From positions 62,001-126,000 of the forward strand of contig CBFDEM010000060.1 in the NCBI GenBank assembly GCA_965603825.1: a DNA stretch of 64,000 bases, given 5' to 3'. Both the position numbers and the translations under genes were made by a program. The notes below the pieces were generated by a model. That model did not search any database. It was not told where the DNA came from and saw only the letters and a program-made list of their open reading frames with translations. Origin of the DNA: Blepharisma stoltei ATCC 30299 (taxonomy: Eukaryota > Protista > Ciliophora). Positions 13,005 through 31,412 of this stretch are shown in pieces (the first letter of the stretch is position 1; every line of letters begins with the position of its first letter).

Positions 13005-13757
13005 ATGCAAAGAGACTTCAAACTTCGGACTCGTCGTGATCAAGACTTTATTTCCCAACCCGACCCTGCATCTCATAACTTATCCAAAGGCTCAAAATCA
13101 TTCAAAAAGCTTCCAAGTATCTCAACTTCTGATGAAAAGAAAATAAGCCACGACTTATTAAGATCTTCCACAATTCCTATGAATTCTCCATCATCTCCAT
13201 GCTTACAAATCCCTATCAAAAATGAAATAGGAAAATTAAAAACCTTAGAAACATCTCAAATTAATGTAAATTTCATATAGAAAATTTCTGAATTAAAAAG
13301 AAAAATAAATCAGCAAAAAGAAGAAGTAAAGCAGCTTGAAAGAGAGAATGAAAATTTAAGAGTAATTGACTATGAGCACAGAGTTTTGCCGCTATCCCTT
13401 CAAAACGAAATGATAATAAGAGCTTTCCAACTGTCACAATTACAAGCCCAAATATATGAAGACCAAATAAATCAGCTAGAAGAGGAGCTTGAAGATCATA
13501 ATTACTGAAATTTCAATGAAAATGAAGACATTCATGCAGAATTAACCGAAGAAGAAATAGAGGTAAATTTTAAATAGAAAATTCCAATATTTATTGCTGA
13601 CTCAAATTATATTTGTTTGTGCTGCCAATGTGACATACCTGAAGATTCAGTTGCTAAAAGACTCCCAAACTGTGGACATTATTTTCATCTGGATTGCATT
13701 GATAACTGCCTGAGACACCAAGGTTGCTGCCCAATTTGTTATACAATAGCAATTTAG
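13005..13757 (+). CDS. Coiled-coil plus C-terminal RING-H2 protein (E3 ligase-like); introns 13266-13280 and 13563-13577
   Basis: Removing GTAAATTTCATATAG and GTAAATTTTAAATAG and reading one TGA as Trp yields CLCC...CGHYFHLDC...CPIC. Confidence 0.85.
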
Positions 13758-18812: not shown

Positions 18813-20226
18813 CTAAAATTTACGTTTAAGAAACTCTTGGAGGACTTCAGTGTTCCTCAGCGATGGAGGGGATTTTGATTTTAAGTCTTCAGGCTTTGTA
18901 AGGAGATTTATGGTCTTTTTTGGAGCAATTTTGGAGTAGGCCTTGGAGACTTGTTCGATGAAATCGTAATTAGACTCGACTAATGTTTTTTGAGAGGTAT
19001 TAAGAGGGGTCATTGAGTTTACCATCTTATGAATAGATTCTTGCAAATCAGTTTCAAGACGAGCAGTTAGGTCAGAATATTGCTGGCATAGAGAAGATAC
19101 TGTTTCTGACTGGATTTCTTGGAGTTGGGATTGGACAGCAGTTGAAATCTCATGATAAGATTTTTCGTTTTCATTGATTTTTGAAGGAATTTCTATATGA
19201 TTTTCTGATTCATTTCTGTATCGGAGGTTTATTGACTTTGCATCAATTTCTGAATTTTGGCTTAAAAAGTTCCCAGTTTCAATCTCCTTCAAGGTTTCTT
19301 CTAGTTTTCCTCACAGCTTATTTTCGACTCTTTTCCCGATCCTATCCCCTTCAATTTCGATATATTCTTGCATTTTAACCAGCCCAATTTCCAATCTTTC
19401 TCGAGCAATTTCTGTCCAAATATGGTTAATATGATCTCCAAAAGCACTTGAAACTAGCTGCACCCTTGATTTTATATTATTTTTAATCGCTTTTCGTTTG
19501 CCTGGCACATCCCCTACAACTAAACTTAAATCCACACTTCTTGAACGAAAATTTCTTTTTTTTTGATTTTTTGAATACAAAATTCCTTTTTGCCTGTCTT
19601 TTGGTGACATTAGTTGGATATATGATAAACTTTTTTGTAAAAAATTTCTTGATGATAACTCATCATTAAAAGATTTATGAAGGCTTGATTCAGCTTTTCT
19701 TGAAGAATTTAACGATAAAAAGTCTCTGATTTCTTCATTAGTTGCACGATCTATTGCTTTTTTTCCATACTAAATAGAAGTTTACACAATCACATTTATC
19801 GATATCAGCACCATTTCGTATCAGAATTTCCACTATTTCTTTATGGCTGTTATAAGCTGAAACCATAAGTGGGGTCCATTGACGGCAATCCTCTTTATTA
19901 ATATCTGCGCCTAATTCGATTAAATATTTTAGGATATCTCTTCTATTATATCAGCATGCTAGAAATACTAAATTTTGCCCAGCCTAAAGTTATTTTACCT
20001 TATTGCATTGGTTTATGTCAGAGTTTTTAGATAGTTCTTTGACAATTTGTATATTTCCGAGTTTTACAGCGATTGAGAGTGCTGTGTCTCCTTTCTAATT
20101 AAAATTCACATCATCAAAATCTTCGAGTTTTGAGCTGGGGGCGAGAGACTTGACAAGATTTATGTCATCTTTATCAACTGCCATCATAAGTGGCGTGTAG
20201 CCACCTAAAAGTTTGTTGGCAATCAT
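18813..20226 (-). CDS. Ankyrin-repeat protein; introns 20095-20109, 19984-19998 and 19770-19785
   Basis: Splicing three 15/15/16-nt GT-AG introns restores ankyrin motifs (GYTPLMMAV, GDTALSIAV, WTPLMVSA). It joins ORFs 19311 and 18813 via TGA. Confidence 0.85.
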
Positions 20227-22633: not shown

Positions 22634-22731
22634 ACATATGTACAAATGTAAATACTGAACAAAGAAAAATTCTTATAAATAATATTTAATACTTTTTATT
22701 AATATTTCTCTAAAGAAAAGGAGTAATAATT

Positions 22732-24543
22732 ATGGAAAATTCAGTCCGTAGACTTTCACTTATCAGCAACCATCTAGGACAGCACATTCCAAAGTACACA
22801 TGGTTCAAACCTGATGGCTGGGTAGGCTTTATTTAGGGATTTACAGACACAAAATTTTTCTTAAACAAGCAAAATCAAGTTTACCTTGGTGGAAATCGCT
22901 ATTTGGATTCAGGCAAAATTTTACCATCATTTGCACAATTTTTCCAAGATCAAGGATTAGAATTTGCTAATAAGTCTACAATACAGAAATCAATACCAGT
23001 TGACCCACCTGTAAGGAATCAGGACTTTTTGGATAGGATAAAGCAGTTTTCATTCTATGTGACTGAAGAGGATCAAGACCGTGCTTTTCACTCGCATGGA
23101 CACACATTACAAGAAATGTTTATTGTAAAGTTCGGAAAATTTGATAGAACAGTCGATCTTGTGGTTTATCCAGAAACTGAAGAGCATGTGGGAAACATCG
23201 TTAAACTCGCTAACGAGCTAAACGTTGTATTAGTCCCTTATGGAGGTGGAACAAATGTAACCCATGCTCTCCAGCTTGATCCCAACGAAAAAAGAACTAT
23301 CTGCTCAGTAGATCTTAGCAAGCTCAGCAAAGTCAAAGAAGTAAACAAAGAAAGCATGACTGCTGTAGTAGAGGCTGGAATTGCAGGAAAAGACTTAGAA
23401 AAAGAACTACTTAAGCATGGAGTTTGCTGTGGCCACGAGCCTGATTCAGTTGAATTTTCTACACTAGGCGGCTGGATCAGCACAAATGCATCAGGGATGA
23501 AGAAAAATATTTATGGAAATATTGACGACATTGTACTTACTATAAGAATAGTAACACCTTTAGGAACTTGGGAAAAGCCATGCAACGCTCCAAGAATGTC
23601 AACAGGACCTGACGTAAACCGAGTTTTAATCGGAAGTGAAGGCTTATTTGGGGTAATTTTTATCTAGATCATCACAAGTGCCACAATTAAAGTCAAACCT
23701 CTCCCAGCACACAAAGCATATGACTCCTATGTTTTCCCAAATTTTGAATTAGGCACAAAATTCATGAAGTTCTTAGGAGTAAACAACATCCGTCCAGCCA
23801 GTGTTCGGCTTGTTGACAATATGCAATTTCAGTTCGCCTTGTCCTTAAAACCAGCTGAGCACTCTATATTTAAGCATTTTATGGACAGAGTCAAAAAATT
23901 TTATTTATTAACTATAAAAGGATTTGACCCAAAACAAATATGCGCTTGCACACTGGTCTACGAAGGTAATAAAGAAGTGGTCGATTTGCAGCAGCATCAA
24001 ATAGACGAAGTCGCTAGAAATTTCAAAGGACTTCGTGGAGGCCCTGAAAACGGCCTCAGAGGGTATTTTTTGACCTATATGATTGCTTATCTTAGAGATT
24101 TTGGGATGGAGTATGACCTAGTCGCTGAGTCCTTTGAGACTGCTATATCTTGGGACAAATTAGATAATCTCCTTAAATCCTTGCCTGTAAAAATTATATA
24201 GAAATGCATAGAAGCTGCATGTGCTGCCAGAGGGGTTAAAAAAAGACCATTTGTGTCATCAAGAATTACACAAGTTTATGACACGGGGGCTTGCGTTTAC
24301 GTTTATTTTGGATTTTTCCATACAGGAGTCCCTGATCCAGTTAAAGTTTATTGTGAAGTTGAAGATGAGGCTAGAGAAGAAATTTTACGATGTGGAGGGT
24401 CATTAAGTCACCATCATGGAGTGGGGAAATTAAGGAAAAAATTCATGAATAAATGTGTGGGAGAGCCTGCACTTTCGATTTTGAGAGGCGTAAAGAAAGA
24501 AGTCGACCCTAAAAATATTTTTGCAAATGGGAACTTAATTTAA
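22732..24543 (+). CDS. AGPS: Alkyl-dihydroxyacetonephosphate synthase (peroxisomal FAD enzyme); introns 22822-22836, 23653-23667 and 24187-24201
   Basis: PYGGGTNV, GHEPDSVEFSTLGGW, SGMKKNIYGNI, SHHHGVGK and VDPKNIF motifs. N-terminal PTS2-like RLSLISNHL. Three 15-nt introns keep the frame. Confidence 0.93.
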
Positions 24544-26033: not shown

Positions 26034-27041
26034 ATGGAGAATAAACAATCCTATACCAAGGCTTCATTTAGCGTAAAAAGACGAAAAGAGTCCAACCATT
26101 TCGATGAGCCCAGCGATAGCGTTTATGCTCCACGCTCACCCTCAAACAGTCAGAGCAAAAGAAACCCTATGGAAACCCGAACCCGAAGCCTCGCCGAAGT
26201 AAGGGGTCTTCCTAAAGTAAAAACCCCGACAAAAAATGTGAAAAATAACAAGCCAACAATTTCTTGAAGAAACGACAATAAACAGCTTGACATTTCAATA
26301 GAAGCAGCTGGGAAACCAATTATTTCCCCCAGAAATAAGTTTAAAAAAGCCTTTAAACAAAACAGTCCATATAAAGCCAATTATTCCATGCAGGAAATAC
26401 CGGACTTAAATGAAAGCGAAGTGTTTTCTGATGTGAAGTCCATGAAAACAGAAATTGATAGGCTAAACAATACTATTGAAGCTATGAAAGGGTTTTACAA
26501 GGAAGAGGAAAGGTCTTTGCATAAGCAAATAACAGCTTTGCAAAAAGAGCTAGATTGACTAAAAAAGGAGTATAGTAAAACTGTCGAATATTTAGCCTGT
26601 GTTATTGGAAAGCACATGGATAAAGAAACTCCGCAAATAATAAATGACGAAATAATAGAGACTTTAAAAGAAAAACAAGAAGCTTTGAAGCTTAATTTAG
26701 AGGCTGCAATAAATTCAGTCTCTTCATTTAAGGCTAATGACAAGCTAAAGCTTGATATTCTGAACGTCCCCAACAATTTTGAAAATCATCCAAACCTGCC
26801 AAGCACAGGGCGATTTCAAGGTGTCGCAATGAGGTTCAGCGAGTCTGAGTCCGAAACAGAAAATTCCCCAAAGATCGAATGCATTGCTTTATACGATTTT
26901 TATGCAAGAGATCCTGGACATTTAGAGTTTAAAGCAGGAGACAGAATTATAGTAAAATCAAAATTGGATGATGAATGATGGATAGGGACAAATAAAGAGA
27001 AAACTGGAAAATTCCCAAGCAGCTACGTTATGCTAGATTAG
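26034..27041 (+). CDS. Coiled-coil plus C-terminal SH3 protein, 335 aa
   Basis: ALYDF...LEFKAGDRI...E-W(TGA)-W-IG...GKFPSSYV. Single frame with three TGA. Confidence 0.9.
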
Positions 27042-27423
27042 CAGATTTAAATCTCTAAATTAATTTTTAAATCAGTAGTAGAAGTATGATTATTTTTCTT
27101 GTATGAATCAAAATATTTCGCAATTTTTATAATTTGCTTTATTTTAATGCATTGTGCGCTAAAAATAATTAATTATGTGTGAATCAAAAATACTTGATAA
27201 ATAGAGTTTTTAAAAATTTAGATATTAAACTTTAGATCAATAATAGCAATTAAGCAAAGCAAATAAATAAATTATCTTTGTCTTATATGTGTAATATTTT
27301 AAGTTTTGGGCAAATTAAAGGAAATTTAATTAATTTGTCTACAATACTAAATGATATCATCTTCATAATAAAAAATATTTTAAGCTTATTTCAGACTGTT
27401 CATAGGTTTTAAGCTAAGTTTAG

Positions 27424-27550
27424 TTACGGTGAGTAATGGTAGTCCCTGCCTCCAGCAGTACCATTCTGAAGTAGAAGTTGTGGAGTGGTAGAAACTCTTC
27501 AATGGCTTTCGCATTAGCATTTAGCTGGCTGAAAGACCATCTTATAGTAG
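27424..27550 (+). promoter_or_regulatory. Candidate structured cis-regulatory RNA (four-way junction) overlapping the putative start codon and 112-nt intron of the methyltransferase gene
   Basis: Four nested helices found by eye. G-U pairs favour the + strand. CTCCA/TGGAG loop-loop complementarity. Confidence 0.5.
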
Positions 27551-28372
27551 AGGTTTTTCTTAAGAAAATTTATTGCTAAGCGATTTTCAACAGATCTTTT
27601 TTCAGGACACTCTGATTTATACGCTAAATATCGCCCTAATTACCCTCAAGAACTTTTTGCTTATTTATCCTCTCTAACAAAATCCCATGATCTTGCATGA
27701 GATGTTGGAACAGGAAATGGCCAAGCTGCATTATCTTTAATACCATACTACTCTACAGTTATTGGAACTGATCTAAGCCAGCAGCAAATAGATATCGCCA
27801 GGTCTAAAAATTCTCCAATTATCTTTGAAGCGCTCCCAGCAGAACTATCAGCAGAAATCCTAAGCTCTCATAGCCTCCTGACATATGAAAAAATCGATTT
27901 AATTACTATAGCAACAGCATTACTTTATTTTGATTTAGATAGATTTTATGACACGGTTTATAAAGTTTTAAAACAAGATGGAGTAATCGCAGCTTGGACT
28001 TATGGAGTGCCAAATGTCGATGAAAATGTAGACCGTATCGCTAATAAAATTTACTGGGAAGTTTGCTATGAGTTTTTTGATAAAAGAAGAAAATATGTTG
28101 ATGAAAAATTCAAGACAATAGATTTCCCATTTGATGAAAATTTACCAGAACCTCCTGCTGCTGCTAAATCATTTACAAAAATTTGGAGCATTGAAGAATA
28201 TTGAGGAAATATTCATACGTGGTCAGGGGTCCAAAGAGCAAAAAAGGAACTAAATTTGGACCCTACAGAACCTTATTTTGCAGAACTCTGCAAGTACTGG
28301 CCTAGAAATGAGAAGAAACCAGTGGAGTTTCCACTTTATTTTCGTATAGGTAAAAAGAAATTGTCTTCTTAA
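27436..28372 (+). CDS. Class I SAM-dependent methyltransferase; start inferred as ATG 27436 plus intron 27439-27550
   Basis: Open frame 27551-28372 with YAKYRPNYP, A-W(TGA)-DVGTGNGQ (motif I), VIGTDLS and VLKQDGVIAAW. It has no in-frame ATG, so the start model is an inference. Confidence 0.8.
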
Positions 28373-28393
28373 TATTTGTATTATAATTATTAA

Positions 28394-28735
28394 ATGGCTT
28401 CCTCAGTCATATATTCCCTGCAAGAGTCTTTCAATATTCTAAAGGAGAAATACACAAAGGAGACTAAGAAAAGAACGAAGCTGGTTGATCTTTTTATTTC
28501 TTTCAACTTAATTTTGGCAACAATTCAGTATGTTTATATGAAAATTGCTGGAAGCTTTCCATTCAATGCATTTCTATCAGCATTTTTTTGTAGCATTGGA
28601 ACAGCAGTATTAACAGTGTGCCTGAGGATGCAAGTAGAGAATAAAAGTTCAGGGAAAACTGAAGAAAGAGCTTATGTGGAGTATATGTTCTGTTGCCTTA
28701 TATTATATTTGGTCTCATTTAATTATTTAGGCTAA
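28394..28735 (+). CDS. DAD1: Oligosaccharyltransferase subunit DAD1/OST2
   Basis: KLVDLF, IQYVY, GSFPFNAFLS, VCLRMQ, ERAYVEY and FNYLG signatures. Confidence 0.93.
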   Translation: MASSVIYSLQESFNILKEKYTKETKKRTKLVDLFISFNLILATIQYVYMKIAGSFPFNAFLSAFFCSIGTAVLTVCLRMQVENKSSGKTEERAYVEYMFCCLILYLVSFNYLG

Positions 28736-29243
28736 TACTTATTTATTTGCTAAACTTTATGCATAAAATGCCTTATGAAGCTTGAAATAAATAATTGCCT
28801 AAGCCCTTCCTTAAAATTGAATTTTAGCACTTTAAATCTAAATTTTTTTTCGATCGCATCCTGATCATTTTAATGCTTTTTAGGTTTTATGGGTTTCTAT
28901 GGAACATATTTGTTGTAAATTATATAAAATTATTATACTATTAGAGCGTAGATAAATTACAATATATAGGGAATAATATGCACTGTCCTTCTGTAATATC
29001 TCAATCACTATTAAATGAAGTGCTTAATTCTTTAACCTCAATAATGTTATTTTATTGTTTATAAATCAATTATTACTTATAAGTATAAATGCATTGGATC
29101 AAATTTCAACAATTTAATAAATTTTTAACAAAACATCATAATAAAAATCATATTGTAGCCATAAGAAATTTTTCATTTATTTAATCAATATCAGTCATTA
29201 TAGAATATTGGGCAATTTATAATTATTCCAAAACCAAATAATT

Positions 29244-31412
29244 ATGGCTAGGAAATCTTTCAGAAATTTATCAATCAATGACTCGTGCTACTATCAAGAT
29301 TCTTTCTTAGGGTTTATTGATAAATCTTACGAAAATCTATTTCTGGTAGACACAGGATCAATCTACAGTACTTCTTTTCAAGGTTTATTTGTGTGACTTA
29401 TTTTTGTCAATATTTTTTTATATGAATGCAGTGAAGGGATTAACACATATATAATTCTGGGATTTACTACATTATCACTGCTTCTGTATTTTATGAAACT
29501 TGATCGTTATATGGCTACAAGCATTTTTGGTGACATTTTATGTACAGTTTTTCAACTAAAAACCATCGAAACAGGCTCGCTAATTGAGTGTGTGGGTGCT
29601 TTTTTCCCAAGTTTTTTATTGAATATTTTAGGTATCAGAAAATGAATGGTTTTCTTTATTTTTAGTCTACTTAAGTTATGGATATTTTATTTTACAAATA
29701 ACACCCAACCCAGTGTAATGTTCTTCATTATAATTTCATATACAATTTTGAATTATTTTATTGAAAAAGAAATACGTGATTTTTGGGTGCTTTTTCATAG
29801 CTATAAAAAAGGTTTTGAGCAACATGACGATATATTTATGTACACTCCTAATGGCCTTTATATTGTTGATGAAGAAAGACATATTTTGTACCATAATATT
29901 AGAGCAGCTGAAGTTGCATTTTTTATAGGAAAAGCTGATATAAGCCGACTAGAAAAATTTGAGGACATGTTTGATGATGATCATAGAACTCACGTGAAAA
30001 GAATGGTCTTGGAAACAATTAAATGGGAAAAAAGAACTGAAGAAGTTATAATTAGAAAAAAAGATAAAGAAAATAACAGCATTGTGACTTTGCAGTTTAA
30101 TTTTGATTGCATTGATTTTAAGGGGAAAAAATGCACAAAAGTTGTATGTGCCAATATTTCTAACGCTGCTTTGCAAGATACTTTTATATCAAACTGCTAT
30201 AAAGATTCTTTAGGGTCTATTGAAAAGTTCAGCAAACATTTATTCCAAGCTTTTAAATTAAATGAAAAAGTTCATAAAGAGTTATTAACAAAAATCTATG
30301 AAATCCAGCACAGATTGAGGACTTTTTATTTAATTCAGTGCAAGCTACTGAGTAAAATTGAGATCAAGAAGGACTATTTTGACATCCAAAGAGAAATTTT
30401 TAATACAATTGAAGGGATTTTTCTGAAGGCTGCAAAAAGAGACTTGGTGATTACATTAAATTTATCCCAAAATATTCCGGATTGTTTAATTGGTGATAGA
30501 ACCCTTCATAACTACCTAGTCTACTCAGCTCTGGATTTTATTATAAAAAAATCAAAGAAAAAATCAAAAATTTCATTGTCAGCTTCCATCGATTCTTTGA
30601 AAAAATCTGAAATTATTGTAAAATACGAAATATGTTTTGCATCATCATCTATCACACAAGATGAGCTTGACTGTTTATTCCAAATAAGACAGCAAGCTTC
30701 CAGACGAAAAACATTTAACGATCTCATATTAATCCAACAAAACTATGGAAGCGAACTCCTAATGTTCGACTCTTTAGTCTGTTTATTAAGAGGCTATATC
30801 GATGCCAAAGTTACTGAAAAAATCTGTATAATAACTATAAACCTGCCAGTTATCCCTGTAGAAAGAAAATCAACAAGCAAGCTGGAATTAATCACTGGGT
30901 TTTGCACTCAAGAATCTGATAATGAATTTCGCTGAAAATTTGAAAAAAAAGAAATTGATGAGGTTATTAAAGAAGCTCCTGAAGAAGTTTCTCCTCTACA
31001 AAATGAAGTAAAAGAATGGAAAATTTTGCTTTTATGCAGCCAAAAAGATAGAGAAAAATCTATTAAAAATGCGCTGAAAAAAGGGATCACTGAAGATTTA
31101 GCATCTGTGAATAGTGCAGAGCTAGGTGCTTATTTATATGAAAAAGAAGCAAAGAAAGGGGAAAATTTTAATATAGTTTTTATTGATTTTAAAGTGCCGA
31201 AATGGGAAAATATTTTAAAAATAAAGGAAATAGAGAATGCTAATGAGTATCAGAAAAGTTTATTTTATGGGATTACTGATAGGGAGGAGTTTGAAGAAGA
31301 TGATTTTATTTCTCAGTTCGATGGAATTGGTAATTTTAATGTAGTTAAGTTCCCTATAGATATAGGGATAATAAAAAATGATTTAGGGATAAATGATAAC
31401 CAAATGATTTAA
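29244..31412 (+). CDS. Membrane sensor resembling a degenerate hybrid histidine kinase (TM, PAS-like, HATPase-like, receiver-like); probable intron 31330-31344
   Basis: One frame via three TGA. PNGLYIVD..ILYHN (PAS-like), IPDCLIGD (pre-HATPase segment) and FNIVFIDFKVP (receiver-like). Confidence 0.7.

Follow-up and report, generated by a model that had tools for sequence, protein, structure and literature searches.

A stretch of about 121 nt on the forward strand of the window, i.e., of the whole 64,000 nucleotides of Blepharisma stoltei DNA analysed here, most probably encodes a guide RNA of the box H/ACA type, as predicted from its anatomy and its complementarity to the ribosomal RNA. It lies at the upstream border of a methyltransferase frame that lacks a start codon, and the GT-AG interval 27429–27550 (122 nt) encloses the whole predicted snoRNA, end to end. 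In our preferred reading, this interval would be an unusually long and poorly spliced intron near the start of the methyltransferase RNA. The freed intron would become the snoRNA after trimming of a single base, and the spliced mRNA would read ACG followed by AGG TTT, such that the near-cognate ACG starts a mitochondrial-type presequence. One splicing event would yield both the intact guide RNA and the protein that an earlier, sequence-only reading of this locus had proposed. To the whole chain of guide RNA, 122-nt splicing and ACG initiation we assign a probability of just under 0.4. The features are compiled in Table 1.

Table 1. Features of the leader and the methyltransferase frame (window coordinates).
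Feature	Position	Strand	Remarks
Transcript 5' part, candidate exon 1	27379–27428	+	contig starts 27379 (X4, furthest 5') and 27394 (X1)
Candidate near-cognate start ACG	27426–27428	+	in frame if 27429–27550 is removed; inferred
GTGAGT donor	27429–27434	+	best U1 pairing; first base of predicted guide RNA
Predicted box H/ACA-type guide RNA	27429–27549	+	about 121 nt, 44% GC, single copy
Hairpin 1	27430–27469	+	lower stem, pocket, 4-bp apical stem 27446–27458
Pocket 1, 5' guide	27436–27445	+	perfect 10-nt complement of SSU rRNA 307–316; contains ATG and donor of the sequence-only reading
Pocket 1, 3' guide	27459–27461	+	3 bp with SSU 302–304
Box H-like AGAAGT	27473–27478	+	in unpaired hinge; pocket 1 is 14 nt away
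Extra small hairpin in hinge	27479–27501	+	predicted fold
Hairpin 2	27502–27540	+	4-bp apical stem 27515–27527; ATG of uORF2 is part of its lower stem
Pocket 2, 5' guide	27505–27514	+	perfect 10-nt complement of SSU 890–899
AUA box (ACA variant)	27544–27546	+	16 nt from pocket 2; A27544 is 7 nt before acceptor 27550
Tandem TAG TAG	27545–27550	+	in-frame stops; candidate acceptors 27547 and 27550
Methyltransferase frame	27551–28372	+	class I SAM-dependent, PF08241; 273 codons, TGA=Trp, TAA at 28372

Anatomy of the predicted guide RNA

The minimum free energy fold of 27429–27550 consists of a hairpin, an unpaired hinge with AGAAGU, a small hairpin, a further hairpin and an unpaired AUA tail. The fold z-score of the whole RNA is only -0.8, and the main hairpins reach about -2 each. 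Each guide stops precisely where an apical stem of 4 bp with a loop of 5 nt begins, with an unpaired U-U at the stem base, and the two A-N-A boxes keep distances of 14 and 16 nt from their pockets, within the 14–16-nt rule of H/ACA RNAs. Pocket 1 pairs with 10+3 bp around its predicted target, SSU U305 (L115:4091 in the rDNA of the same genome), or with 7+3 bp if the lower stem is kept. This is above the minimum of 8 bp reported for pseudouridylation guiding (PMC6049503). Pocket 2 pairs with 10+1 bp around SSU U888 (L115:4674), its 3' side contributing only 1 bp, and the hinge box AGAAGT shows the A-N-A of the consensus ANANNA with T as its sixth base. At the tail, AUA at 27544 would take the role of the ACA box, whose place in this class is 3 nt from the 3' end. 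Because of the two departures in pocket 2 and the hinge box, we call the RNA H/ACA-type rather than a proven member of the class. It would guide pseudouridylation of U305 and perhaps of U888.

The sequences required by guide 1 and by the stem of hairpin 2 would also explain why ATG-GT and a second ATG occur in this leader; ATG-GT at 27436–27440 is the first half of the 10-nt guide 1. In a long-context fold of the unspliced RNA, a hairpin at 27531–27559 buries AGG and outcompetes hairpin 2. Removal of the 122-nt piece would abolish this hairpin.

Statistical support and database searches

With 44% GC compared to 19% in the preceding intergenic DNA, the leader is the most GC-rich non-coding 120-nt stretch within the 64 kb. 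It contains two perfect 10-nt complements to the rDNA of its own genome (L115), both in the SSU, where a single 10-nt match is at background level on its own. The 13-bp pairing of pocket 1 was reached by one in 400 shuffles. The two-unit pattern, i.e., a 10-nt guide with apical and lower stem and a box at 13–16 nt, occurred in none of 20,000 shuffles, rates that overstate the case since the scan rules, which follow the usual H/ACA geometry, were fixed after the 10-nt matches had been seen. Under the same rules, the minus strand of the leader gave no hit, and no other pair was present in 264 kb on both strands. When the rRNA was shuffled instead, each guide found a match in 1–3 of 3,000 trials, and both together in 0 of 3,000. 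Counting against the guide reading, there is a partial resemblance between each guide and the rRNA helix to which it pairs.

The Rfam scan of the stretch returned no relevant match at E up to 10, and DNA and covariance-model searches of the own genome (150 of 303 model candidates scored) found it in a single copy. Neither an upstream sequence element (USE) nor a telomere template was detected at the leader. Other identities were rejected. The genes of U1, U2, U4 and RNase MRP sit elsewhere in the genome. A box C/D snoRNA would carry a RUGAUGA motif, of which there is none, and a guide of 10–21 nt ahead of CUGA; the guides before the two CUGA motifs pair over 7–8 bp, within background. A four-way junction was dismissed because its closing helix is unformed in context (probability near zero) and its whole fold is no better than that of shuffles. 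For known riboswitches (TPP, SAM classes), the scan gave no aptamer match up to the same E-value.

As a separate observation, a second U1-like copy (L114, G000:C18:451628-451788) has a changed 5' end without the donor-pairing ACUUACC.

The methyltransferase frame and its missing start

The frame 27551–28372 belongs to the Methyltransf_11 family (PF08241), and the positions given in the sequence-only reading are correct. The frame contains no Met, begins with AGG at 27551 directly behind the in-frame TAG TAG at 27545–27550, and has a presequence-like N-terminus with five basic and no acidic residues among the first 14. A methionine-free interior is not unusual in the family, being found in 11 of 111 homologs. 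The public annotation holds no gene model between the SH3 gene and DAD1, where the frame lies. A base error at 27552, which had been offered as an alternative, was ruled out by three RNA-like runs (X1, X2 and X4), whose contigs show no other letter.

The frame is under purifying selection. A second allele, present in one run, differs by 12 synonymous and 4 non-synonymous changes (pN/pS about 0.10, P about 1e-5), with no stop and no frameshift; therefore, the protein is needed now or was needed until recently. Two Blepharisma paralogs are 52–55% identical to the product and have presequence-like starts of their own. Both carry an ATG exactly in register with the AGG codon, and within the first 17 codons 7–8 residues are identical, including an R-K upstream of ATT 27572. 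A homolog in another species that also reads TGA as Trp has a plain ATG behind an AT-rich leader and one residue more at its start, so register alone cannot separate a start loss from an intron. Start-context scores gave no discrimination either, with ATG 27436, ATG 27502 and AGG 27551 all in the lowest 20–30%.

In comparison with Methyltransf_11 proteins of the 'putative methyltransferase DDB_G0268948' kind, SAM motif I and the residues that matter at fold level are intact, and the nearly invariant His-Trp pair is replaced by Leu-Tyr. In total, four residues that are kept in 95–100% of 110 homologs and in both paralogs are changed (H125, W126, W176 and Y187 to L, Y, F and F). In the tree, the two paralogs and the homolog from the other species group together to the exclusion of the methyltransferase, with moderate support (94/90), and this homolog is nearer to the paralogs than to the frame studied here. 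The gene is an old copy with a changed predicted active site. Word search, metagenomes, DAD1 synteny and one large protein search yielded only the paralogs and this one homolog, and no orthologous locus.

Two side observations concern the family. A 73-bp TA-bounded germline IES maps to window position 27923 (L086:2457-2529), inside the frame at the codons of the His-Trp to Leu-Tyr change. One paralog (L004, region of G000:C57:624698) runs without TAA or TAG for 719 codons, about 445 of them past the methyltransferase domain, which suggests a fusion or a lost stop.

Transcripts and splice joins

Two contigs, 27394–27784 (X1) and 27379–27693 (X4), pass through the leader without a gap, i.e., the observed transcripts are unspliced through the proposed 112-nt intron, and their depth is about that of the coding part. 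No spliced joint at the leader was seen in the contigs of four runs of one study. The RNA nature of these runs is presumed, with coverage proceeding gene by gene and falling to zero at 27112–27313. Efficient splicing is excluded in those samples by the gapless contigs. A minority spliced form may have escaped notice, as assembled contigs lose minority forms and the compared stretch includes no established intron that could serve as a positive control. The unspliced RNA contains the two upstream frames described before, uORF1 at 27436–27474 (+, 12 aa) and uORF2 at 27502–27579 (+, 25 aa), the latter out of frame and overlapping the main frame by 29 nt.

The sequence-only reading had joined ATG 27436–27438 to AGG through a 112-nt intron, 27439–27550, as the only productive splice choice and had interpreted it as an on/off splicing switch. 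ATG followed by GTAGTC is indeed present. The uniqueness, however, did not hold, since eight canonical GT-AG joins yield a frame opened by ATG, six from ATG 27436 and two from ATG 27502. An additional productive join, a 115-nt GGT-AG/GT-AGG version, gives exactly the 17-residue register of the paralogs. Among shuffled leaders, 69% have at least one productive join, and the exact pattern of a bare ATG followed by GT, with an acceptor just before AGG, occurs in 6%. With unspliced contigs, a weak donor and a join that is not unique, neither the 112-nt intron nor the switch finds support, while a long intron in this leader stays plausible.

Introns of 15 or 16 nt were rightly named as the usual kind. 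In Blepharisma, 97% of introns have these lengths and TGA encodes Trp (10.1101/2021.12.14.471607; PMC9942806 supplement), and splicing declines with intron length (PMC9942806 supplement). The interval 27439–27550 falls outside both this length and the GTAA-type donor of Blepharisma introns: in a set of 15 tiny introns picked by strict criteria, 13 start with GTAA and none has a GTAG donor. Three donors overlap in the leader, of which GTAGTC at 27439 is the weakest. GTAAT at 27433, which the sequence-only reading had missed, fits the habit of the genome, and GTGAGT at 27429 pairs better with U1 than GTAGTC. By chance, GTRAGT would fall into any one 10-nt segment with a probability of 0.2–0.8%. 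At the other end, an A stands at -7 from acceptor 27550, as is the rule in 16-nt introns (PMC9942806 supplement), whereas neither -6 nor -7 is an A in the case of acceptor 27547. A rescue by a tiny intron was rejected, because no 15–16-nt intron opens the frame and the shortest solutions measure 25–34 nt. The published intron caller accepted introns of 10–99 nt only (10.1101/2021.12.14.471607). As it was limited to two-digit lengths, an intron of at least 100 nt could not have been annotated, and the annotation is silent on this question.

Competing explanations

The main rival to the 122-nt intron chain is a recent start loss, which we regard as unlikely. The guide RNA would be real and trimmed from unspliced read-through, and AGG would be the product of a recent ATG>AGG change, so that the reference strain no longer translates this paralog. 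Such a loss is consistent with the unspliced contigs, with the position of AGG one base from ATG at exactly the codon where both paralogs begin, and with the four altered residues. However, three of these four changes are conservative aromatic swaps next to an intact SAM motif, the low pN/pS and the lack of stops and frameshifts confine the loss to the recent past, and it would be mere coincidence that the RNA opens with a donor and that a TAG immediately precedes codon 1. Conversely, the missing joint in four runs speaks against the 122-nt chain, and the ATG of the paralogs in register fits a start loss as well. A translation start at ATG 27436 by way of the 112-nt intron or its 115-nt version is distinctly unlikely. 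Its donor lies buried in a stem (85% pairing probability) and is weak, the contigs show no such joint, 6–11% of shuffled leaders reproduce its pattern, and ATG-GT is already accounted for by the rRNA guide. Since a cut at 27439 takes away an arm of hairpin 1, the guide RNA cannot reside in the 112-nt intron, and given a guide RNA the two donors would be an either/or: 27429 would free the snoRNA, whereas 27439 would make the AUG mRNA and cut hairpin 1. That a heterotrich spliceosome of the 15–16-nt type removes a 122-nt intron consisting entirely of an H/ACA snoRNA, with the host mRNA starting at ACG and the second donor 10 nt downstream possibly switching between snoRNA and AUG mRNA, is a tentative and somewhat doubtful proposal.

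The remaining explanations dispense with the intron or with the snoRNA. The leader might be a structured element acting in cis, riboswitch-like or based on uORF control, that gates splicing or initiation of the SAM-binding protein. Hairpins bury both ATGs and AGG, the competing hairpin 27531–27559 dominates in the long context, and two loops carry complementary 5-mers. Yet no Rfam riboswitch matches, the four-way closing helix has practically no probability in context, neither the paralogs nor the homolog from the other species have such a leader, and two SSU complements beside uridines would go unexplained, which together renders it improbable. Recoding of the unspliced RNA, by initiation at the near-cognate ATT 27572 inside the frame or by a +1 shift from uORF2, is very improbable. 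It agrees with the form of the RNA that is observed, with the 29-nt overlap between uORF2 and the main frame, and with the many homologs that have only 5–8 residues before the first conserved Phe, but the identities with the paralogs in the first 17 codons include residues upstream of ATT, and two ATGs and three hairpins precede it. Largely refuted, and hardly credible, is an assembly error at 27552 or a retained IES or MITE relic (TA 27425 to TA 27548, 123 bp). A relic would be in keeping with the TA ends, which show a weak inverted repeat, and with the GC-richness of some local IESs; against it, the germline-plus-IES record marks none here, the same sequence stands in the somatic window and in the IES-bearing record, no TA-bounded excision restores ATG, and the stretch is single copy. 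For an error, the G would have to be wrong in three runs alike. Elsewhere in the region, the germline record L086 (GCA_914767885.1) shows eight inserts of 72–1044 bp relative to window 26065–30138, of which two, 361 and 192 bp in size, carry long inverted sequences at their ends.

Relation to known systems

Fungal TPP-riboswitch introns, e.g., in Neurospora NMT1, likewise lie at the 5' end, have donors that compete, and carry uORFs when they are retained. The candidate intron shares these traits with NMT1, but no TPP or SAM aptamer matches here and an rRNA guide accounts better for the structure.

The predicted RNA resembles the H/ACA snoRNAs of Tetrahymena (124–136 nt, six of them with an AUA box; PMC3273799) in its size class of about 120–135 nt, its two hairpins, the box in the hinge, the use of AUA instead of ACA, and a GC content that is high against the genome. 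It differs from them in its box H AGAAGU, the extra hinge hairpin, the lopsided pocket 2, and the lack of an upstream USE and of an Rfam family match. A few Tetrahymena H/ACA snoRNAs are hosted in introns of housekeeping genes (PMC3273799), and a few larger introns of Paramecium contain snoRNAs (PMC5485702). As in Paramecium and in the intronic snoRNAs of Oxytricha (PMC3177221), the hosted snoRNA would explain the length of a rare long intron. Unlike in these ciliates, the candidate snoRNA would fill its putative intron end to end, directly after a non-AUG start. For heterotrichs, whose introns measure 15–16 nt, we found no literature report of long introns filled by a snoRNA.

A near-cognate ACG that opens an N-terminal targeting sequence, here a predicted one, has a counterpart in the mitochondrial isoform of yeast ALA1, where ACG initiates at about half the level of ATG and AGG does not initiate (PMC2909995). 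In contrast to ALA1, whose downstream AUG makes the cytosolic form, there is no AUG here, and ACG comes into frame only after splicing. Non-AUG starts in Blepharisma were not reported in the literature we searched.

The guide RNA alone would be an ordinary kind of gene, unannotated so far, in a lineage for which very few snoRNAs have been described. Along with it, a methyltransferase gene that is selected and, judging from RNA-like contigs, expressed is recovered for a region where the public annotation misses it. If the 122-nt intron is true, being about eight times the usual Blepharisma length, it bears on whether heterotrich spliceosomes are limited to 15–16 nt, suggests that introns of at least 100 nt form a class left out by the design of the published caller, and adds a non-AUG start in Blepharisma.

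Further GC-rich stretches

Two non-coding GC islands were noted outside the leader. The one at L107:1920-2240 (G000:C60, about 291920-292240) reaches up to 51% GC without a useful Rfam match and is possibly an unannotated RNA gene; the second, at L095:4450-4870 (G000:C60, about 174450-174870), has neither a long frame nor an Rfam match. Smaller GC-rich stretches outside long frames lie at window positions 13611–13750, 20081–20200 and 22721–22840.
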